The position numbers and the translations under genes are program-made. A stretch of DNA of 63,505 nt, the filler included, from Choristocarpus tenellus KU-1152 (taxonomy: Eukaryota; Protista; Phaeophyceae), in assembly GCA_964200185.2 (NCBI GenBank). It is 9 parts of 9 records of this genome, joined end to end, with 100 filler letters (N's around TTAATTAATTAA, not from the genome) between each part and the next. Parts side by side here need not be neighbours in the genome. Positions count along the whole stretch, not along the records: positions 5,465 to 17,021 come from CAXNAD020002257.1; 8 more parts are not named here. One strand, given 5' to 3'. Below are positions 420 through 17,021 of this stretch, piece after piece (within the stretch, counting starts at the first letter, position 1; every line of letters starts with the position of its first letter). Under the pieces are notes generated by a model. The model saw only the letters and a program-made list of their open reading frames with translations, was not told where the DNA came from and did not search any database.

Positions 420-3215
420 TCAATCTCCTTCCTTGTGGACACCATTTCCAGATGTTTCACCCGGCAACCCCTCGGCTTTATCTCCCCCTGCCCCTGGCAC
501 TGTTCCGAGAATGGTGTCTAAGGGAGGCACAGTGAAGGCCAGCCAGCAGCTATCATCTTTGAGATGATGAAGAGTGTGATGCCGCTTCAGGGCCTTCCAA
601 AGTTTTGACTGTGGCACCACCCTGCACAAGGTATTACAGAGGTGTGGAAAGCACAGATGGGACTCTTGTGAGTTGCTCACACAGCCACGAGCCGCCCTCT
701 GGCTACCAACCCACACACACATACGTGACCCACCAAATATTCCCTCAAGAGTAAGAATCGTAGGAGCAGGGTCAAGAACACAAAACAAAGGCGTACATGG
801 TGTGCAAAAGGGGACAAAGGTGAACATGAATGCACAGCAGGGGGAAGGGGGGAGCAAGGAGGTTAGAAGCGCCACTGTGATCATGAAGCAAGAGCAGAAA
901 ATGTGTTCCTAAGCTGTGCTCCACGTGTGATGAAACACTCCCAGCCCCAGCCCCAACGAAAACCTCCCTCCCCCACCCGTGCAAATCCCTTTGCATTTAA
1001 AAACTCCCCAAACCTTGTGTGCACAATGTAGTGCGTCCACTCGTATACCAATCCCATGGTCATGTAGCACCCCAGAACCGTGAGGGACAGTGGTGCTGGG
1101 AGTACAACAAAAAATATGGTGGCTGCAGCTATGGTCCATGCAATGACAAGGTCTGGGGGGTCCAATGACACATGATAGAATGGGAGATCATGGTGGTTCT
1201 TGTGAACCTCGTATCCAAGCCATTCCTAATGTCAGGAGAGGGAAACATGGAAGGAGGTAGGGAGGGATTTGAAAGGAGATGGTGGGGCATGTTCTAAAAA
1301 AGTTGTTTTTTGCCTTGTCAAGGTTAGTTGGTGAAACCAGGGAGGATGCACCCTAAACCTTCAGTATGTATAGGAGTTGGGGTCTCTCTCAGAACAGGCC
1401 TCCTGTTTGAATACAAATGTTGGCAATGTGTATAGATACCCCATGCATGATTATTACAGTGCCACTTGTGAATTACTTTTGACAATGGGACAAGGTGATT
1501 GCACAATGAAACTGACAGTCAACCTCCATGTAGTTCCCCCTTAATCGCCCCCATAGATGCTATCTCACTACAATTTGCTGGAATTTTTGTCCTCCTAGCG
1601 CTGCCAAGAAGACTTATTGAAGCCCATCGCAAGAAATCAGCGCAAGAAATCAGAGATGTTTGGTGACAAGCATTTGAAAAAAGGACAAATTTCGTTGTTG
1701 TCATATTACAAAAAGTGACCGTTGGCAGGACAGTTTAATGGTTCAAGGACGTTTCAATAAGTGAGAAACATCATACCCTATAAATGACTAAACTGCGTAA
1801 CATGTTGATAGCTGCGAAGTAATGCTCTGGTCAGCAGACTGGCTTTTGTGTGCTATGATACCTCAAAACCGTGTAGCAAGAACCGGTGGATAGCCCACTC
1901 CTGGATACTCCAACCAGCAGCAACAACGGGCAATGCCATAGCATCAGCAACACCTAAGGGACATGCTGCTGTGCGTGCAATAAAAGTCACTGCTACACCT
2001 GTTGGAAATGACAGGAAAGTGTACCAGGGGTGGGGAGGGGGGGGATATCAAAACTGAGGTATGTAGTAGTGAAGTGGGTACATCGAGAAGGAGATTATAG
2101 GCAGCGTGTGGGGAAATTATAGTGCCATGATTCATGCTACAGTGAAATTACAAATAAGGGCACCCCATGGACTGGATTCAGTCTTGCCCTCGAGAACGTC
2201 AAAGAACAAGACTGTCAATGATGTCGCTAGAAAATCACGTCAACAAATGTAACACATACTTATCCACTATCTTCACAGCTCCCTCAGGTACCCTATTTTG
2301 ACTCTTCATTCTATTATCCGGCGAGAAAATTCTCAGTCGACAGAATATCTACTTGGCTTGGGAGTAGCACCTTTACCTGAAACGATCAATCTTGGTGTAG
2401 AGTGACCCAAGAAGGTGTCCACAGCTTCTGGTAGGGTGCAAGGCACGTCAAAGTTGACACTCGGCCACCTCCTTAGCACTTCCTTTAGTCCAGGGTAGAG
2501 AGTACAACATAAAATTTTCATTCAAAACGTCTTCGGGAAGAGTGGCACTGAAAATTGCAAAATACGGTAGGCAGTCGAGGTGTCAGGGGCAATGAGCCTA
2601 CCTCTCTGGGAAGCTGCCTCGCGTCCACTAGGGTCTTCGGTTTATCCCTGATTGCAGGGGATGCATAATACGTTGAATTAGTACGCAGGGTTAGGTTCAC
2701 AAGATTGGCGGGTTGGAAACGAAGAGTGGAAATATCTTAAAACGCAGTTAAACGATGATGTCATGGGTCAACAGACAGTAGTTGCGACTTTTGCATCTCT
2801 TCTCCAGACCGAAATCCCATCTAACAGCAAACACTTGAGCAGCTCAGAACAATCGGTCAATTCCATCAAGTAGTAACAAGCAATAAGGCTACAGCCTCAA
2901 TATGGAAAGCTCTTCGGAGGGGACACAGTGAATGGCGAGGGGCTCACCCAAATGAATGCCAACTCACCCAAATCGATCTCCATTGACAATCTTCTTGGCA
3001 TCAACTCCCAGATCTACCACCACAGTAGCTGGATTCACCACAGTAGGATAAATCGAGGACGCCTCTGCGGCTGCCAAACCTACTCGACTTGAACGAGCTG
3101 AGAACGCTTGTGTTTGTGGCGACTTCCCGACATGTGGAGACCACAGGCCTCCACATTGAAGCGCTACGCAAGGTGATACACATGCCACACCTGCAAGGAG
3201 TTGGATAGCCTTCAT
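420..3215 (-). CDS. Fatty acid hydroxylase/sterol desaturase superfamily membrane di-iron enzyme, 6 exons (approx. 3215-2968, 2647-2602, 2482-2377, 1998-1862, 1225-1014, 621-420)
   Basis: His boxes EWAIHRFLLH, HKNHH, YEWTHYIVH and KRHHTLHH in frame-compatible GT-AG exons; N-terminal signal-peptide-like MKAIQLLAGVACVSPCVA followed by a Ser/Ala/Arg-rich stretch (possible plastid targeting). Confidence 0.88.
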
Positions 3216-5464: not shown

Positions 5465-5568
5465 CTCTCCCGTATATCAAGATATCAAGAACCCTCTCCC
5501 GTATATCAAGATATCAAGAACCCTCTCCCGTATATCAAGATATCAAGAACCCTCTCCCGTATATCAAG
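5465..5568. repeat. 29-bp minisatellite, about 3.6 copies
   Basis: Unit ctctcccgtatatcaagatatcaagaacc repeated perfectly at the contig start. Confidence 0.92.
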
Positions 5569-5847
5569 CGATCTCTCATGAAGGCATGTAGCATACTCGT
5601 ACTTCCCCTGAGCGGGGATGGAGGTAAATGCTGTCAGGCACGCTCAACAATTTAGAAACAAGGTAAAAAAATACCCATATAAACTAAACCCTACTCTAAT
5701 CCACACCAACAACCAAACATGTATTTCGTTCTAAATACACTATATCCAATGACATGGTGAGTGTAGCACAGCGTCACCAATAGAAACGACATGCAAGCGG
5801 AAAGATTCCAATTCAACGATAAATTTCCAGTTCAACGATAAACTTCC

Positions 5848-6108
5848 GAGTGTAAGTATCTTAGGGTTAGGGTACGAGTTTTGCCCTGTTTGTCCATTTG
5901 GGGCTTGACTTCCTATGGGCGTTTTATTACATTTTCCTTCTCCAAATGTCTCCGAGTGGGTAAAATGTGTATGTTATTAGAAGGCGTGTCCAGAATATCG
6001 ACATGGACACTTCCTAACACACACAATAGCCAAGATTTCATCCAAATTGCAACATTGGACTTTGGCTCCCAAATGGATGCGGCTGTACCCTCTAAGATAC
6101 TTTGGCTC
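5848..6108 (+). mobile_element. ~260-bp MITE family A copy with TTCC target-site duplication
   Basis: Ends gagtgtaagtatcttagggttagggtac...taccctctaagatactttggctc; TTCC at 5844-5847 and 6109-6112. Confidence 0.88.
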
Positions 6109-7145
6109 TTCCAATTCAACGATAAATTTTTAAACGCTTGGTATAGGTAGTACGGGCTTGCACTCCACAAAGCCCCTTGTGCTTGTATCAACACATGCGT
6201 ATTAGAGTCTTCTCAACTGTCAAATCTCACAGTCTGCATGTTTTCATCAGCATCAATGGTTGAGCGTTATCATGTACTCTAGAGTATGTAACAGATTCTT
6301 GTTGTAGTATATCCAAATTATGAAAAAAAAGTTTCAACGCAACCTTGCAATACAGTAGTGATCATTGTTTGACTTCTGGGATTTCATCACATGAGGTTCA
6401 GCATATCACCACTGAGCACACCGATAAACAATTACACCCTACACACCCCACTACTATTCTCCCGCAGGTCCTTCACCTCACCACCATAATAAACACAATG
6501 AGTACGTAACTTTCTCACCTAGGTGTCTCCACCACACAGGTACAAGATATGACTTCCGTGAGCAGAATCATGGATATTCTTCCCTACAAAACCTCTCCAA
6601 TAGACCTATATATAATTTCTGTGTTCAAACCATCTCTCTCCAGGACACTTGAGTGATACCATCTAAGAGGATGGTGTCGTCAAGCATTAAGGGTCCCCAT
6701 GACTGCTGGTGGCACATATTTTTAAGCACTATGATGAGCACTTTCTGCTAGCAATGTATTTACAACTGATTTTCTCTTTTACACTCACACCCTCCTCAGG
6801 GAGTAAACTTCATTTCAGAAATGGGCATGGTGCATGCTGCACAATTTTTTAGAGGACTTGAACTCAAAATGGCCTAAATTGGTCCCCCTTAAACGCCATT
6901 CAACTCCTCAATGCTTACCCCTCATAACAAATGCCCTATGTATACAAAGATGATGCAGTGAAACAAATGACTAACTACTGTAATACGACGAAACCTTGCC
7001 ATAAACCAGAATTATTTCAGAAAAGTAGGCCTATTAGTATGCATCCAGAATTATCTCAATGGTCACAATACTAACAGGCCTCAACCTTGTCTCCAGTATA
7101 CAATACTAGCTTGTACAAGATTTTGTGTGGATTCACATTACTCAC

Positions 7146-10100
7146 CTGAACATGCCGTAGCACAGCTAAATTATGTAGGGAATCAGCGATGTCTGGGTGG
7201 TCAGCCCTCAATACCCTCTCACGCATTTCAAGCGACTGCTGATAATGGGATGCCGCATCCTCATACTTCCCCTGGACAGATGGAAGGAAACATTTGTAAG
7301 ATGTCAAAATTTGATAAACAAGATCTACAAAAACTCTACCTGTAAACATCGATACTCACCACTCCAAAGCATGCACTTCTTTCTAAGTACACAACGCTCA
7401 CCCATGTGATGCATCTGATGAGTGAGGGACGAATATATAAAGGACATGTGAAGGAAGCATGACCTACCCTACAACATGCCTATTGTAGTCAAGGTTTGAC
7501 CACTCTTACATTGAAAAAATGAACAGGAAACGAGATATGCGCTACATATTTTGCATGTTACTTCCTCTGTTCGGAATTAAACGTAAAATAACTTTTGGGC
7601 CCCCGATTAAGAAATATTTTTTCATACCTTCATACATTGTAGGTGTATTGCTCAGACACTAGAATATTGCCATTCAAATCTCAAGTAAATTGAGGCAGCC
7701 TGCACTTATCAATGATTCTGCCCCCGAAACCCTCAAAAACTTCATTCCAGCAAGGTATTTCGCCGAATCCATAGGGGCATTCAGGGAGAGCTTGCCGGCC
7801 TTCTCAAGCATTTTCCTTCCGAAGATGGGGATGTTGAAGACGCTGTCACCCCTTGGACCCCAGCACTTCACTGTCGACTGCTAAGAGACTCTGCCAGATG
7901 TGCTCTCTAATGTCTCCTAGGGGTACACATTGAACGCCCCTGTTGTGGCCTCCACCAGCTCCTCTGTGTTGGTTGCCTCCACGTCTTCCTTCGGTTGCTG
8001 GATGAAATGGAAGAGTCCCAGGTCGTTGGCATTGAGGTCAGGTGATTTGGCTGGCCGGGTCTCTATGATAACATCGTCCCCCACTGCCTCCTTGATTGCC
8101 TCTATGATCCCCTCCCTTGGTGTATGGATTTGCCCCAACCTGCTGCACGAAGATGATGTGTCCTTCCGACCTAGGTATGCGGACCTTGATTGCTGGGATG
8201 ACACCATTGATCGTGAGCTTCTTTTACCTCTCTCCATCCACTGTGGCTGGCACAAGCACCTTGGTCCCTTGGGTCGGTGTTTGCTAGAGAGCTTTTGAGC
8301 AACCTTAGTGTCCACGATACACCAGATCCCGATTTTCCCATCAAGCACACCACTGGAGAGCTTCCTAGGGCAGGCCACAGCTGCAAGGAACATCATCTTC
8401 GTAATGCAATGCTATTTTCTGCGAGTGGGGGGTTGGGGGGGTCCTCAGTGCAGTGCAGGCACATACCTTGCCCATCTTTGAGGATGTACAACCACTCCTC
8501 GACCAGATACACCCAGTATAGATCGTCCACTAATACCCCACTTTCCCCCCCTCCTGTGTGCGCGGCTGATAACAAAACCCATCCTGTTGTCTTTCTGCTG
8601 GTCTGGGAGGACTGGCTTAATCCACCAATTGACCTTCTTGACCTTCTTGCGCTTGCATAGATCCCGCAACGAGGCAAGGGAAACCCCAGCATTGGTCACC
8701 CATGTGCGGAAGGGTGTGCGATGCACTGATGGGGCATCCAAAACGTCAAGGATACTTGTATGGCGGCCACATCGACCCTTACGACGTCGTACAAGGTCTA
8801 TGCATTCACCCCGTAGGATCTGGCTGTCATACTCCTTCAGATGACTGAACACGATGATTCAGGATATTCCAAATTCCTCCACGATGACCACGGCAATACG
8901 CCCACATCCCCCGAAGCGGCCGAGTCTTGCGCCCTCTCACCTCCAGGAATCGCGCCACCACGCTTTTCATCATCGGGGTGTTTGAGTCTGGACCCCGGAC
9001 AGACTTCTGGGTCGAAGAATTAGGACCGACGGGCGACGACGAGATGAGCAAGTCGCTTGAACGACGGGGGGCCTTCATCCTAGGCATACCAAAAAATATT
9101 TCCACAGTTTCACAAGGTTTTTTGAACCCTGTCAAATGTGACTTGGTCGACTTTGCACTAGTGATCCTCCACAGTCATGACATCCCACCATCTGAAACCT
9201 TGCACCCCTCCCAATCTATAAGAAACCTAAGGGTCATCCAGGGGGTTTATCACATTGGTTGTTCCCAGGCAAGAACAGAGCTTGCAAAAGGTATGTTACG
9301 TTTAATTCCGAACAGAGGAAGTATTTATATTCAGATACTTGAAGTATTGTGAAAAACACTACATTGGGTAAAGTTCAATTTTGTAAAAAGACGGGATTGA
9401 TACAAAATCTACGAGAGAGAAAAGGGCCGTAGATCCTCTAGACCAAAATAGGCTAAAATAATAAATCGTTTTCACCACATATAATACATACATTTCATCA
9501 TTTGTGTGCAAATGTTGACTCAAGACTACAACAAACTAATACTAACTGGAGTAATTAATAATACGCCCCATGAATACAATTTATGTTTTATAACTGCTGG
9601 AGGTATAGGACAAGAAAAATCAAAAGCAAACTCAAGATCCAAGAGAAGCGATGAATGACTTTTGATTATAGGAAAGACGTAAGTCTTGCTGATTGGTGGA
9701 TGAATCAATACTGCTATCCCCTCTAAATGTGATCTCCAACTTACTTACAGATGGACGAGGTATGCTAATGTTTTTCGAGATCTGAGGTTCAGATGTGTTG
9801 GAAAGGAACACGTGTTGTAAAGGGGAAACACAAAAGATTGGTTAGTGATGGACTCCTTCAAGTAGTAGTACACAAGAGTATCACATATGCATGTGAAGAA
9901 AATATAACACATACAAAGTAAAACAACGATTGATCGGCCGCAGGGGAACATGTGGGCACACTTTCTTGTCAAACCTAACAAGTGTTTGTAGGTGATAATT
10001 ATTTTTTTGTGTATTCATATAATGAAAGCTATCTATTGAACTTCAGGCAAACATGAACTGCTGCGATGATGTTGATCAGTATTAACAGTGCTGATCATAA

Positions 10101-13100
10101 ACCTCAGAAATGCATCAATTAGTGGATGTTGACGAGCCAAACAGTTGGAAAACCCTTAACACAATACACCAATGGACAACCCCGGAAATTGCCATTTTTT
10201 TATGTACGGGCCATCAATTAGAGGTACACTATAATTCACAACTAACCATAGCAAATAGAATATCCCCACGTTGTTTTGTTGCCTCAGCTGATAAAGGATG
10301 CTCATCTCCAATTCCTCCATCAACGCTCAGCATGTCAAGTGCCCTCAATGTCAACTTATCTGCCTCATCATATAGACCCTGGACAGAAAATAAGGAGCAA
10401 AATCATGAAGCTTAAACTCAGGCTCAAAGTATCTGGGGGGGGTGGGGGGTGTACAACAGGGTGTTCATTCGGGACCTGATCAGGAGAAGTGCACTTACAT
10501 TAGATACTTGAGCCTCAGTGTTAAAAACCGCTGTGATAAATTGAATCCAAGAATAATCAGAATCACATTGAATCTATCACCTAGTCCACTATTTACTATT
10601 TCCTCTCTTGTGCATGCTGTGCAATCTTTTTATTTTTTCCTGCGATGCTTGGAAGTGCTTGGTGCTTCAGACATGCTTCGATCCAGTATATTGAGTCATC
10701 GATTTTTTGACCAAATGAATGCATATTCAACTATTGCAAATCAGCATTCTAAGCTATCAATCATGGACAGAGAGAAAAAGTATCTTAGAGGGTACGAGTT
10801 TTGCCCTGTTTGTCCATTTGGGGCTTGACTTCCCATGTCTTTTTTAATGAATTTTTTCTACTCCAAAATGTTTCGGAGTAGGTAAAATGTATACGTTATG
10901 AAAAGGTTTGTCCGAAACATAGATATTGACACTTCCTGACAAACACGATAACCAAAATTACATCAAGATCACAACATTGGATTTTGACCACTAAATGAAC
11001 GCGGCTCTACCCTCTAACATACTTTGGCTTTGACCAAGGCTTCAACAACGGATAGTGCAGGTGTATTCGGCAGTCCTTTCTTCAACTGATTTCTACCCCA
11101 GAAGAGTGGAATTATTTTGGAGGGTACAAATTTGCCCTGTTTGTCTGTGTGGGGCTTGGCTTCTCACGGGCTTTTTATGACATTTCCCTATTCCGAAGTG
11201 TTTCGGAGTATGTACAATGTATACACTATGCAAAGGTGTGTTCGGAACAAGGATATTGACACTTCCTAACAAACACAATAGGCAAGATCCCATCAAAATC
11301 GCAACATTGGATTTTGGCCCCCAAATGGACGCGCCTCTACCCTATAAGATACTTTGACTCAGAACGAATTCGGAGCAGGAAATTCCACTGTTCTATTCCT
11401 GGCAGAGTTGTATACCTCATACAATTTTAGTGACTAATTTTCGAAACATTTGAGATGAATCAAACATGCCTGACCCATTCAATAGGCATGCACCTACTCA
11501 GTATTGGATCAAGAATATAGTGTGAAAAAGGAACAGATACTTCCCCATTATGTTGGGTGATGCTGGCTTGAGTTAAAACAATCCGCACTGCATGACTCAA
11601 GGAAGACGACTACAAAGGTAATAGTTTGAAGAGGATAAGGCATACAGCCCAAGTGTTGCCCTCCAGATTACCGAGATGGGGGTAGAGTAACGCAGTCCAA
11701 AAACAAGCAAATATTGTGTTATGTACACTATAAACTTGTCGGGCAGTGAATTTGGGGAAGATCATTCAAGCTCATGAGGGAGGATGGCTGAGAAAGAGGG
11801 TGGGGAAGGAAATCCTTACTCCCTCTCTCTTGTACTTCGTATGTTTGTTTGTTTGATCAATAAGTTGGAAAGCTAAGGCTCAGTAGAGCGAGTGTCACCA
11901 CAAGACGGAAACCCCTTTAGTTAGATAATTGATTGATGTCTTCAATACAAACATCATTCCTATCAACACACCGTTATGCTCAAATCCATACACCCAGCTA
12001 CATCAACTGTGATTTCCAACCAACAAAGAGTTCTACCAAGCATCACAGAACAGGTAGGGCAACATCTCCATTGTACCCACTTCACAGTATATAGACCAAA
12101 AAAGAAAAAGGTGCAGCATTACAACAAGTCCTAACAACCACTTGTACATGTACTATTTATGCTTGAAACACAGATCATCACGTAAAAAAAACAATATCTA
12201 GTCACAATTTCAACGAGGTGTTCAACTAATATGAGTGCTTTCTTAGGCGATTCACTGAGTAAGACTAGATATCTCCTCATTTCGGCTGTAGGAAATCAGA
12301 GTTTGGTGGAGGGAGGGATATGGCCTCATCATAATTACCGCCATTTGTAATTAATTCAACATATTCCATCAAGGGTATCGTTTGTCGTTACACCAATCCA
12401 GCCCACCAGCTCAACCGAAACCTGATCTCCCTAAGTGTCAACGTGCCAATCCAATATTTTCATTCTTGATCGATCAATCAATTTTAGTACAAAACTTCTT
12501 ACACAAATGAACCTACTTCTTTCTGCCTCTTACACGCACGGACATTCTCTAGTGAGTGAGTCCTACTAAACAAACCACTCTGTGATGCACCTTACTGGTG
12601 ACTAAGACTAGATCAGATTCAACGTGTATCATCAAAGCACCACTACACTAGACATGTTGGAGTCGTTCTTGCCTGAGCTATCATTGAAGGAACCATGTTG
12701 CATATTGTTTTTGCAACATCCATTTTAGCTCTTCGAACTCCAGATCCTCCTGGGACCTGGGCCAACTTCAGTCGCTCATTTGTTGTAGTGTAGACCTATT
12801 AAAGAACAGAGGGTTCAAGTAGCACTCATCAGTATCAAACTTCATTCAAAACTTCGCTAACAATAAAAAGCACAATACCACACCTTTCGCCACTCCTTCA
12901 CAGACTCGCTGTATCTCCCACTCATATGCAGAGTTGCTGGCAATGCATCCCTTAGTCCTTTCCAGTCCTCTTTGGCAAGCTCGACCATTTTCTCCGTAAC
13001 CTCAACATTCCTGTGGTGGAAAAGATGGTAAGGTTCCATTGCATGTGTGACATGAAGGTCTCTCGCCCACTCGTACACTTTGTGTGACCCTTCCTTAAGG

Positions 13101-14255
13101 TCGAAGAAAGTTCTCAGGTGTAGCTGAAGCTCACACAAATGTCCGTGTCCATGGTCTTGGGGGACGATCACATTCATCTTCACATCCCGATATCCGCCAG
13201 GTGTGTAGCTACTCCGGAACCCATTGGTCACTCTTACCACTTCAAATTCCTGTGAACGTCGGAAGGGAGAACAACAGTAGCGCACCAGGATTCGGCCTTC
13301 CCTACAGGGTAACAATCAGATGGCGGAAGAAACAGTGGCTCTGCCGTACACCTCTTTACTAGTGATCCTCACCTGTGTGTCCTTGAGCAAGTCGAACATA
13401 CGCCGTAATTCTCCTGCTGTCTTGCAAACGACTGAAATCCTCGCCATGTCAGTGACCAGGCGCAGGTCACCTTTTGCCCATGCCATCTTCGACTTGCGTA
13501 TTGTGCTCTCTCTCGTCTTCAGCAGGCCCTCAACCACATCAGCCGACACAGACGCCGCGATCCCCCTCACGATGCGGTCCAACTTGAGTTTAGCTTCTTG
13601 CGCATCTCGGAGATAATCATCGACAGAATTGTGTGTACAGGGCTGCCGGAGGTGCTCAGGAAAATATGGCGTAATATTCAGAGCATCAATATTCTCCTGT
13701 TGCAGAGCTAGCTCGAAGTAGCAGTTGTCGTAGTCGTCCTGGTATTTCTGTACAAAGTGAACATGCAGAAACACCAACAAGTTCTCTTTTGCTTGCAGTG
13801 TGGTTTTCTTCCGCTTGAGGTCGTCTTCCAGTCGGTTGATGACGTCCTGCTGACTCCTGATATCTTCGTCCAGTTCGCGTACCGCTTGGAACTCCTGTTG
13901 TTCCGTAGTGGATGGGGTATGTTGAGCATTGAACACTCATCCCGTCATTGACAAATATCGTAGTTAAGATTGGACACAATGACCGGTTGTATCAGCTAGG
14001 GAACCATATACTTCGAAAGATGATAGCTCTAAATGGTAGTGGATGGGACACGTCATCCCAGAGTTCGACCTTGTACATTGGAACAACTCTAGTACGATGT
14101 GGCACGAAACCTTCTCACAATGAGGCTAACCGATCTGTCCGAACGTAGTGATCTATGCCAACAAGCAATCTCGACATAATATGTCGACAAGATAGGAATG
14201 GGTTCACCTCTATTAGTTGGCGTTGCATGATGTATCGCTCGAACGAAGTTCTGGC
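7146..14255 (-). CDS. Coiled-coil + RelA/SpoT-like nucleotidyltransferase (small alarmone synthetase-type) + TPR-repeat protein, partial; exons 14255-14208, 13894-13373, 13249-12884, 12795-12673, 10378-10247, 7271-7146
   Basis: Motifs LKTRESTIRK, TDMARISVV, VRVTNGF, GGYRDVKMNV, CELQLHL and SHKVYE; TPR exons GLYDEADKLTLRALDM...DEHPLSAEA and GKYEDAASHYQQSLEMRERVLRADHPDIADSLHNLAVLRHVQ; all exon lengths are multiples of 3 with phase-0 splice sites. Joining into one gene is inferred. Confidence 0.75.
7561..9321 (-). mobile_element. Tc1/mariner DNA transposon (plant/oomycete DD39D-like) with intact TIRs, TA TSD and frameshifted transposase, located in an intron
   Basis: 26-bp perfect TIR cttcctctgttcggaattaaacgtaa at 7561-7586 and 9296-9321, flanked by TA; motifs MFLAAVACPR, DGKIGIW, PAKSPDLNANDLGLF and GDSVFNIP split across frames. 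Confidence 0.93.
10772..11030 (+). mobile_element. MITE family A copy
   Basis: aagtatcttagagggtacgagttttgccc...ctctaccctctaacatactttggc. Confidence 0.85.
11104..11360 (+). mobile_element. MITE family A copy with AGAA TSD
   Basis: GAG...CTC ends; agaa at 11100-11103 and 11361-11364. Confidence 0.85.
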
Positions 14256-14499
14256 CTGTGAAGAGGTTGGTGTAGCACGTTCAGTATTTATAGAGGTTGT
14301 TGTTTTAAGTGTTGAGGTGGTTGGAATGAAAGAAGTGTCACTTAGATAGATAGCTTGTTCTGGGACTTTTAGTAATAGATTAGACCGTTCAAGGAATGTT
14401 CGTCAATGTCCATAAAAAATAGATTATTGCGTGATAGCTATCTTCCAACCAAGGTATACCTTTAAAGTGCCCTTCGTGGTGAAGATAGACCTCGTTGAC

Positions 14500-17021
14500 C
14501 TCAAGGGGGCAGCAAGGAGTCAACTGGCAAAGGCTGGGCTGGGCGACGAGTATTGGTTCTTCCTTTCCATCACGGAGGTCGCCTTCAAGACTGGAGGTAT
14601 GCCACACGGATACCTGGGAGGAGAGACGCCATGCGAGCGTCTAACAGGAAAATCGTTCAACTACGATAGGCTTCGGGCCTGGGGGAGCGAATGCTATGTT
14701 CACCAGGACAAGCAACAGAGAGGGGCCAGTTCAAAGTTTCACCCATACGCCAAGAGAGGTAAAATAATGGGACATGATCGTACATCACTATGCTGGCACA
14801 TCTGGCTTCCTCAAGTGGTCAAGTTGGTAACCTCAGCCCACGTGACGTTCGAGCCAGACGAACACATCATGGAGTTCTTGGGGGAGAGAGAGACCATGAC
14901 TTCGACGGATAATGAAGAGATTTCTGATACTGAAGACGACACTGATCGTGATTTCGATATTGCAGTCGATCCGATACCTCAAGCAACAGCTGGGGTCAAG
15001 AACTCGACAAGTGCACCTAGTGTACAACGGAGGTCAGCCAGGATAGCTGAACAACCCAGGGTGGACTACAAGGGTTTACACTCTGGAGATATAGAAGAAC
15101 TGGGAGAGAATATAGTGAATCTGCTCAGATCAAGCACGGATGATACATACTGTTTGACGGGTATGGCAGGTGACATCTCAATAGGCCACCAGGAGCCATC
15201 AACCATCGCAGAAGCCCTCGCAGGGCCCGATGCAGAACGCTGGTAGAGGGCAATGGAACAAGAAATGGAGAGCCAACGAACCAAAGGAACCTTCCATGAG
15301 AGAGAGAGTCTGCCACCAGGGAGGAGACCCGTCAAGACAAGATTCATATTCAAAATAAAAAGGACAGCCAATGGAGACATTGAAAGATTTAAGGCCAGGC
15401 TGGTGGCACGGGGTTTTTCCTAACAAAAAGGGGTAGACTACTTCAACACATTCAGTCCAGTGTTGGGATTTGACGTGATTCGAGCAGTCCTGGCTACAGC
15501 AGCTAACAGAAACTGGATCATCAACTCCCTAGACTTCATTCAAGCCCACCTGAACGCACCACTTCCTGAAGATGCATGACTACAACTGCCCAATGGATCC
15601 ATCGTAAAAGCTGCCAGGGCCATCTATGGCCTTAAGCAATCAGCAATGGAGTGGTACAAGGAGCTAAAGGGAAAAATTTTAGCTGAGGGGTGGAGTTTTA
15701 GCGACTTTAACGCCTGCTTATATACAAAAAGGAGTGAAGGTGGAAGGGTTGCTGTTCTTTTTCACTACGTGGATGACATCTCGTTGACTGGAAACTTCCA
15801 TGAAGAAATAAAAGGATGAAGAGCAATCTGCTTACCAGGTACGAAGGACGGGACCTCGGGACCCCAGACAAATTAGTTAGGGTGGCAATCACCAGGGATG
15901 AGGCTGGCATTGCACTAGACCATTTCTATGCAGAGAGCATTGTTTGTGAAGGAATGGGATCCACAGAAGTACGGAGTACCTCATCACCTCTAAACCCAGG
16001 AATGAACCTGACCACAAGAAGAACTGACGAGGAGGAGCTGGACCAGAGGTACAAACCTTACCGCACCATCCTGGGGAAACTTATGTTCCTAGCCGGGATG
16101 ACACAACCAGACCTATCCAACAGTGTGCGGGAACTGGGAAGATATGAGCATCTCCATGCGATCGACACTGGAAAGGACTACAACATGTTCTGTGATACCT
16201 GGTGGGCACCACGAAAGAAGGGATACACTATCCTGCTGGTGGTGAAATGGACAATGGGGGCCTGGCCGGGTATGGAGACTCAGAATGGGGCAATGACACC
16301 TCATCAAGGCGGAGTGTGACAGGGTATCTGATACTCATCAATGGAGCACCGATTGCATGGAAATCCAAGATGCAGGGAGCTGTAACCACATCTTCATCAG
16401 AGGCGGAATGGACAGCGATGGTGCATGGAATGAGTCATGGAACATTCCTCAGAGGCATCCTAGGGGAGCTGGGCATGCTCAAAGGGGTCATGGTTTGGTA
16501 TGGAGATAACCGATGTGCGATTCAAGCAGCAGTTGACATGATAACTGAAGGCTTTAACGGAAGAACAAGGCATGTTGACATCAAGCTGAAATGCACCAGG
16601 GAATATGTCAATAAAGGATTTTTTAGAGTGATGTATATACCTACGACACTCCAACTTGCAGACATCTTGACCAAAAGATTACGCAAGAAGCAGGTAGAAG
16701 ACTTTGTAGACACTGTGTTGACTAGATGAATGTCGTGTGTTAAACTTGAAGTAATCTGCGTTCTTTTACTGCATTGGCAAGATAAATGTGATGTGCGTGA
16801 GAATTGAACCAATCTGACGTCTTTTACTTCCCTTTTCATGGGAAGTGTGCAGAATTGGGAGTTTACACAAAAACATGTTTTAGGTTTGAGGGTTCCAGCA
16901 ACTCTTTCATTGCCTGCACTCTCATGGGGGAGTGTGAAAAATAGGACAATAGTGAAGGGTACCTGATTTTGTATATATGAGAATATTGTGCTGAATTGAG
17001 TCCATGTGATGTAACTAATGA
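14500..17021 (+). mobile_element. 5'-truncated degenerate Ty1/copia LTR retrotransposon (integrase C-terminus, RT, RNase H, PPT, start of 3' LTR)
   Basis: [81 protein letters not shown]; in-frame stops (15244, 15421) and frameshifts; PPT atgggggag near 16924 followed by tgtgaaaaatagg. Confidence 0.93.

Follow-up and report, generated by a model that had tools for sequence, protein, structure and literature searches.

In this study, we describe a gene of the brown alga Choristocarpus tenellus KU-1152 (assembly GCA_964200185.2) in which a RelA/SpoT-type synthetase domain of the kind found in bacterial toxins is fused directly to tetratricopeptide repeats (TPRs). The gene lies on the minus strand of the window, the whole stretch of DNA that was analysed (63,505 nucleotides, filler included), within positions 5465-17021; these positions are the entire 11,557-bp contig C2257 (CAXNAD020002257.1) of a 164-Mb assembly in 27,310 contigs. 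On sequence profiles and a predicted structure, membership of the domain in the stand-alone/toxin branch of the RelA/SpoT synthetase superfamily is established, and we are highly confident that the fold and the domain-TPR fusion are both correct. The best overall explanation, to which we assign a probability of roughly 0.45, is a TPR-gated synthetase of toxin type operating in a setting of biotic conflict. According to this explanation, the locus is an expressed nuclear gene whose protein is probably cytosolic. A short N-terminus leads into a helical segment, which is followed by a RelA/SpoT-type pyrophosphokinase domain of the small-alarmone-synthetase/Tas1/exported-toxin kind, divergent but with its catalytic motifs complete; a short linker then connects this domain to a C-terminal array of kinesin-light-chain (KLC)-type TPRs, with one repeat per phase-0 exon. 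The domain would transfer pyrophosphate from ATP to a nucleotide, yielding (p)ppApp or (p)ppGpp, or to the 3' ends of tRNA. The TPR array would suppress the activity of the domain, in the manner of the C-terminal domain of CapRel, until binding of a ligand or partner, and activation would lead to cell arrest, death or signalling.

The two catalytic exons proposed in a preliminary description of this DNA are confirmed by their open frames, their splice borders (AG acceptors and GT donors) and RNA. Exon e1 (13894-13373, minus strand, 174 codons) encodes a coiled-coil-like/helical segment followed by the first half of the RelA/SpoT-like domain (LKTRESTIRKSK; TDMARISVV), while exon e2 (13249-12884, minus strand, 122 codons) encodes the second half (GGYRDVK; CELQLHL; GSHKVYEWAR) and C-terminal helices. 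The locus is present in three public RNA runs, all from one study. In one of these, X2, a 1253-nt contig with a depth of 297 maps as five blocks (14207+/13893, 13372/13248, 12882/12793, 12672/10377, with an end at 10246), and the intervening DNA has a depth of only 0-4 in the same run; the contig is therefore a spliced transcript. Its joints coincide with the previously described borders of e1 and e2 and add three exons, namely a 5' exon, e3 and T1. All of the exons are in phase 0, and the lengths of e1 and e2 are divisible by three. The 5' exon (14317-14208, minus strand, its extent being the reach of the RNA contig) is spliced to e1 at the joint 13893/14207. The sequence and a frame scan place a start codon, the only ATG of this exon, at 14228-14226, so that seven codons (MQRQLIE) in the frame of e1 precede the splice; the next in-frame stop upstream is at 14405. 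Exon e3 (12795-12673, minus strand) is a linker of 41 codons (123 nt) defined by an RNA joint and conserved in two paralogues of the same genome, C187 and C3537. The intron downstream of e3 is of the GC-AG type, and its GC donor at 12671-12672 is confirmed by the spliced contig. Since four spliceosomal introns are confirmed by RNA, the locus is not bacterial contamination.

Downstream exons encoding KLC-type TPRs on the same strand, as originally proposed, were also found. T1 (10378-10247, 44 codons) is the first and an atypical TPR exon, with a weak match to TPR_12; it is joined to e3 by the RNA joint 10377/12672, and an equivalent exon is found in the paralogues. T2 (7271-7146, 42 codons) has AG/GT borders and matches TPR_12 and TPR_10 (TPR_12 E 4e-9). 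The start of a third TPR exon (5607-5540), also on the minus strand, has a weak TPR_12/TPR_10 match at ~5607 and merges into a 29-nt tandem repeat. Because this repeat forms the edge of the contig, the assembly truncates the gene on its 3' side, and the 3' end lies beyond the contig. The terminal repeat itself occupies window positions 5465-5575, begins within the TPR exon and is likely to reflect assembly collapse at repeated TPR exons. The claim that the catalytic and TPR exons belong to one transcript stands for T1, on the X2 contig, which stops short of T2; the junction of T1 with T2 is present only in the database gene model for this locus, CAM9358505.1 (P0001; 'unnamed protein product [Choristocarpus tenellus]'), whose first ~150 residues are missing. 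It could be argued that two adjacent genes are involved, one with the catalytic exons and one with the TPR exons, given the introns of ~2.3 kb and ~3 kb that lie in between and the dependence of the T1-T2 junction on P0001. However, a single contig splices e3 to T1, which already contradicts this alternative for T1, and the same architecture recurs in the two paralogues C187 and C3537, as well as in gene models made independently for five other brown-algal genera. We consider two separate genes to be very improbable.

Several lines of evidence identify the catalytic domain. Searches were performed with single exons, with the gene model P0001 and with natural full-length homologues. The K..S..K, D..R, GYRD and E.Q motifs are all present in the window exons. 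When used alone, e1 aligned with Tas1 across the K.S..K and D.AR motifs (E 0.61), and e2 and its paralogues matched the C-terminus of the XopAD/skwp model (E 0.002-0.03); PADLOC and NCBIfam searches with single exons returned nothing or weak XopAD/PRK09169 hints only. A whole-genome scan with PF04607 did not detect the window locus, and an ESM-Atlas feature search with e2 was uninformative (scores <=0.84). P0001, which is partial and spans the e1/e2 junction, matched RelP in the correct register (E 0.016). A profile of e2 aligned with three paralogues (A1), searched against 1.84 billion representatives, retrieved 449 proteins at E<=1e-3, 71 at <=1e-10 and 17 at <=1e-30. A further profile (A3) was built from the domain region of 55 contiguous natural homologues, among which two lysines, D..R, a phenylalanine, GYRD, E.Q and H..Y...R are invariant or nearly invariant; these conserved positions coincide with the motifs noted in the preliminary description. 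Searched against solved structures, A3 matched Tas1 (6ox6) with an E value of 2e-12, RelP/YwaC with 1.1e-6 and RelQ-type proteins with 4e-4 to 3e-2, and it also matched SaSAS. The motifs were in register with those of Tas1, RelP and RelQ, including a Tas1-like GH..YE..R. The order of the motifs is not a chance occurrence because the same positions are invariant, or nearly so, in 55 homologues and because the profile finds solved synthetases. Against PF04607, for which the gathering score is 27 bits, intact homologues score 16-20 bits; sub-threshold matches at E<=0.1 were obtained for 14 of the 55 members (best 5.4e-6). Separately, a similarity of e2 residues 40-110 (window 12884-13130) to a Thermotoga ferritin (E 1e-4) was judged to be due to chance, because the E.Q beta-strand would pair with a ferritin helix and because the A3 profile finds no ferritin at E<=10.

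Structural comparisons point in the same direction. An AlphaFold2 model was made of residues 85-325 of P0010, an Ectocarpus homologue with 55% identity to e2 (E 2e-40) and 34% identity to e1 (E 6e-25), and had a mean pLDDT of 87.2 and a pTM of 0.83. The 50 best Foldseek matches of this model were all small alarmone synthetases (SAS), Tas1, CapRel or long Rel/SpoT proteins. With VIA-align, Z scores were 15.2 for RelP, 15.1 for RelQ, 13.8 for CapRel, 12.7 for Tas1 and 11.9 for SaEAS. A total of 26 Rel/SAS-type entries (Z 15.2-9.3) ranked before any other family, and unrelated nucleotidyltransferases scored no higher than 9.1. Hence, the A3 profile, Foldseek and VIA-align all agree with the RelA/SpoT synthetase fold of stand-alone/toxin type that had been suggested from the motifs.

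An ordinary plastid RSH (RelA/SpoT homologue), a hydrolase-synthetase with its remaining exons beyond the piece examined, would belong to the same superfamily. Such an enzyme would be expected to carry a transit peptide and an HD hydrolase in its 5' exons, but translation here starts seven codons before e1 and the 5' exon has no earlier ATG. No transit or signal peptide is apparent by inspection of the N-terminus, which is charged and helical and too short to accommodate an HD domain, and the helical segment has weak coiled-coil-type Pfam matches only. There is no HD_4 match on contig C2257 and no HD hydrolase in the homologues, in which the helical segment comes first and the TPRs last. Ordinary RSH loci are present elsewhere in the genome: PF04607 and HD_4 occur together on C18857 (in one 754-codon frame) and on C97, and there are further matches to PF04607 on C4310 and C66 and to HD_4 on C2442. 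A plastid RSH is thus already contradicted, and we regard it as extremely improbable. The HD_4 match on C2442 (5805-6302, minus strand) is full length (E 4e-42) and contains two internal stops, which may be introns; no RelA_SpoT match was found on that contig. A stand-alone Mesh1/SAH-like hydrolase may be encoded there, and such an enzyme could break down what the TPR-fused synthetase family makes.

Homologues are found in other brown algae, including Ectocarpus fasciculatus, three other Ectocarpus strains or species, Pylaiella littoralis, Ascophyllum nodosum and Discosporangium mesarthrocarpum. Full-length proteins consisting of the domain and KLC-type TPR arrays are present in Ectocarpus, Pylaiella, Ascophyllum and Discosporangium, the TPR_12/TPR_10 matches reaching E 1.7e-130 in 12 stretches. 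Outside the brown algae, the relatives are more distant and come from a pelagophyte, a diatom (Entomoneis), a dinoflagellate, two foraminifera (Nonionella and Elphidium) and a cryptophyte (Hanusia); in addition, there are many metagenomic relatives labelled only 'TPR repeat protein'. The domain is also seen fused to EF-hand and ankyrin domains, to ubiquitin or to a choline-transporter-like domain. A bacterial relative, P0082 (3127 aa), carries an extracellular contractile injection system (eCIS) core domain and a calpain-type protease, and 16 to 22 of the 55 members match the XopAD/skwp and PRK09169 models over their C-terminal part (best E 1e-6 to 5e-9). An ESM-Atlas shape search retrieved a TPR-fused cluster, a diatom cluster, and Nucleocytoviricota and phage clusters. 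The viral groups are structure-similar clusters of hypothetical proteins, with 59 members for Nucleocytoviricota and 140 for Uroviricota. Brown algae are hosts of giant viruses, and we note these viral clusters as a lead on origin or counter-defence.

The likeness to brown-algal receptors with an NB-ARC domain and TPRs, which had been invoked to suggest an immune function, does not extend to the NTPase. No NB-ARC or other NTPase was found in the window protein, in which the 41-residue e3 alone separates the domain from the TPRs, and no NTPase family was found in five full-length homologues (596-1005 aa), where TPR families alone follow the N-terminal domain. Zambounis et al. (2012; PMC3341825) described the Ectocarpus NB-ARC-TPR candidate receptors as having each TPR encoded on a phase-0 exon of its own, tandemly duplicated exons, and turnover of paralogues by birth and death; they also mentioned, without description, 'other repetitive TPR loci'. 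The synthetase family resembles these receptors in being brown-algal and in all three of these features, but lacks NB-ARC and has an enzyme domain as its N-terminal module. A second precedent is provided by Dyrka et al. (2014; PMC4986451), who reported fungal NOD-like receptors (NLRs) with an N-terminal RelA_SpoT domain, so that a RelA_SpoT effector on eukaryotic receptors was already known. In view of the fungal NLRs, the proposal of an alarmone-type effector in a eukaryote is less unprecedented than was implied. Like the algal proteins, the fungal NLRs are eukaryotic and pair a putative effector of RelA/SpoT type with repeats (TPR, WD40 or ANK) at the C-terminus. They differ in having a central NACHT/NB-ARC NTPase, which is missing from the algal family, and in the fungal domain reaching PF04607, the algal domain being more divergent. 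We found no paper that describes an NTPase-less, Tas1-like-plus-TPR family in brown algae or other protists.

Among bacterial systems, the best profile match is Tas1, the type VI (p)ppApp synthetase toxin of Pseudomonas aeruginosa; its K.S..K, D.AR, GY, E.Q and GH..YE..R motifs align with those of the algal domain, and both are synthetases of stand-alone type without a hydrolase. The exported alarmone synthetase SaEAS (8vx3; PMC12691689) is similar in fold. Unlike Tas1 and the exported synthetases, the algal gene is eukaryotic, has spliceosomal introns and a TPR fusion, and is without a secretion or delivery module or an immunity gene. XopAD Rel-like domains are known, as are alarmone synthetases exported by eCIS, type VII secretion or Sec that make (p)ppApp and/or (p)ppGpp (PMC12691689). 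The XopAD/skwp type III effectors, through their C-terminal Rel-like domain, and P0082, with its eCIS core domain, are related to the algal family, but these are injected bacterial proteins with SKWP repeats or delivery domains. RelQ and RelP (5ded, 6fgk and 6ewz) gave the top structural scores, with Z 15.2-14.6 across ~177-181 residues, a region that takes in the C-terminal helices. However, identity is only 11-17%, the bacterial enzymes are ~200-residue homotetramers without repeats, and the algal domain does not reach the Pfam RelA_SpoT threshold. CapRel (7ztb and 9erv; Z 13.5-13.8), a fused toxic SAS-antitoxin that acts as an anti-phage tRNA pyrophosphokinase, couples, within one chain, a RelA/SpoT toxin domain at the N-terminus to a regulatory or sensing domain at the C-terminus. 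CapRel is bacterial and its C-terminal domain is small and not made of TPRs, whereas the alga has a TPR array in that place. By analogy, the NTPase-less repeat fusion appears most like CapRel in its logic, that is, a toxic synthetase restrained by its own C-terminal domain and set free when a ligand binds, and CapRel may be the nearest model for how the algal protein works.

The C. tenellus genome contains five loci of the TPR-fused synthetase family, of which three are apparently intact and two decayed. The window copy is intact as far as it is visible and is expressed. C187 has e1, e2, e3 and an atypical first TPR exon, as in the window, followed by canonical TPR exons; C7333 is divergent (35-41% identity) and open, with its own ATG start. 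In C3537 there is no match to e1, and the TPR array is disrupted by a mutated donor, a stop within it and one damaged exon; its TPR exons form a 389-nt exon-plus-intron unit repeated in tandem 5.7 times at 90% identity. The C7871 copy (1477-2082, minus strand) is near-identical to the window (~97%), lacks intron 1 and is intron-less, and has lost the core from D.AR to GYRD; it is possibly a processed retrocopy or a fragment of a mis-spliced transcript. C187 and C3537 differ by ~2.5%, with dN (nonsynonymous divergence) about equal to dS (synonymous divergence), which fits a recent duplicate in decay. Comparison of the window copy with C187 gave dN/dS values of 0.24 (e2) and 0.32 (catalytic part of e1) at a dS of ~0.8; the enzyme domain is therefore under purifying selection. 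A separate observation on C187 is an exon of leucine-rich repeat N-terminal type (LRRNT-like; 8377-8643, plus strand) that lies a few kb downstream of its TPR array, and two genes of candidate-receptor type may be neighbours there.

It is also conceivable that the window copy is itself decaying, being transcribed but no longer giving rise to a full functional protein. Its introns are full of repeats and contain a transposon relic, the 5' exon is bordered by a degenerate Copia element, no more than two clean TPR exons can be seen, and the sister copies C3537 and C7871 are plainly broken. Set against this, the five exons supported by RNA are all intact, with correct splicing at high depth, the catalytic exons have the low dN/dS values given above, and the 3' part is missing because the assembly breaks off in a 29-nt tandem repeat and not because of a lesion. 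Decay of the window copy is, in our view, improbable.

The nearest characterised enzymes are Tas1, which makes (p)ppApp, SaEAS, which makes both alarmones, and CapRel, which pyrophosphorylates tRNA. Because a basic patch, a Mg-binding aspartate, the GY loop and a catalytic glutamate are conserved, the domain is argued to be an ATP-using pyrophosphokinase, and on these residues we think it likely that it is an active enzyme. The toxin ancestry and the dynamics of the family make both gating by the TPRs and a role in conflict plausible. By analogy, TPR-gated regulation would have about an even chance of being correct, while a defence or conflict role must be put forward tentatively, on the side of doubt. 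More specific still, and unlikely on the present evidence, is the suggestion that this toxin-derived cytosolic family of brown algae and many protists would be an NTPase-less, single-chain immune sensor-effector. In that case, binding of a ligand to a fast-evolving TPR array might release alarmone synthesis or tRNA pyrophosphorylation and result in arrest or death resembling abortive infection, as in a eukaryotic counterpart of CapRel.

A TPR-gated toxin-type synthetase in a conflict setting has several points against it. Single window exons had no RelA_SpoT match and reached no Pfam threshold in Pfam searches, the domain being split by an intron, and the structure was modelled on an Ectocarpus homologue and not on the window protein. 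Of all the TPR exons, only T1 is tied by RNA to the catalytic exons, in a run (X2) that has no recorded library type or condition, and the visible TPR part is short, broken up by transposon-rich introns and cut at the contig edge. A dN/dS of ~0.7-1.1 for TPR exons was measured only in C3537 and, as this copy is a pseudogene, does not separate diversifying from relaxed selection. The catalytic activity, product and ligand of the algal protein are putative. The main alternative is a cytosolic nucleotide pyrophosphokinase with a housekeeping or stress-signalling function, in which the TPRs and the helical segment would be an ordinary KLC-like interaction scaffold with no role in immunity. The age and wide distribution of the family in brown algae and other protists would agree with such a function, as would purifying selection on the catalytic exons, the EF-hand, ankyrin and ubiquitin domains of other eukaryotic members, which are typical of signalling proteins, and the absence of a STAND NTPase. 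However, the nearest characterised relatives are toxins and not stringent-response enzymes, and paralogue birth and death together with tandem duplication of TPR exons is the pattern of the brown-algal candidate receptors (PMC3341825). A housekeeping function is rather unlikely.

What is new is the direct fusion of TPR arrays to a toxin-type RelA/SpoT domain that is expressed and maintained by selection, in brown algae and in several other protist lineages, among proteins whose database labels are only 'unnamed protein product' or 'TPR repeat protein'. If the domain is active, (p)ppApp/(p)ppGpp synthesis or tRNA pyrophosphorylation would take place in the eukaryotic cytosol, and one more bacterial conflict effector would join the small list of those reused in eukaryotes, here without a STAND NTPase. 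Research on brown-algal immunity, for which there are few candidates, gains a family that can be tested biochemically.

The DNA around the exons is rich in repeats and transposon remnants. Within the T1-T2 intron lies a GC-rich block (53-54%; 7917-9174, minus strand) with overlapping broken open reading frames (ORFs) and no Pfam match; it is probably the relic of a DNA transposon and is outside the protein. Very highly repeated short elements occur at 10635-11369, in the e3-T1 intron, and also at ~5743-6150, with a summed contig depth of up to 1.27 million. These elements show numerous alternative joints and loose ends, a short ORF motif recurs in several copies, and their appearance resembles that of miniature inverted-repeat transposable elements. 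Upstream of the gene, a degenerate Copia-type retroelement (14431-16729, plus strand) has a piece of a retroviral SH3-like integrase and, spread over several broken frames, fragments of RVT_2. On the upstream side, the element stops ~115 nt short of the 5' end of the transcript contig, so that the promoter region of the gene is very short or borrowed.

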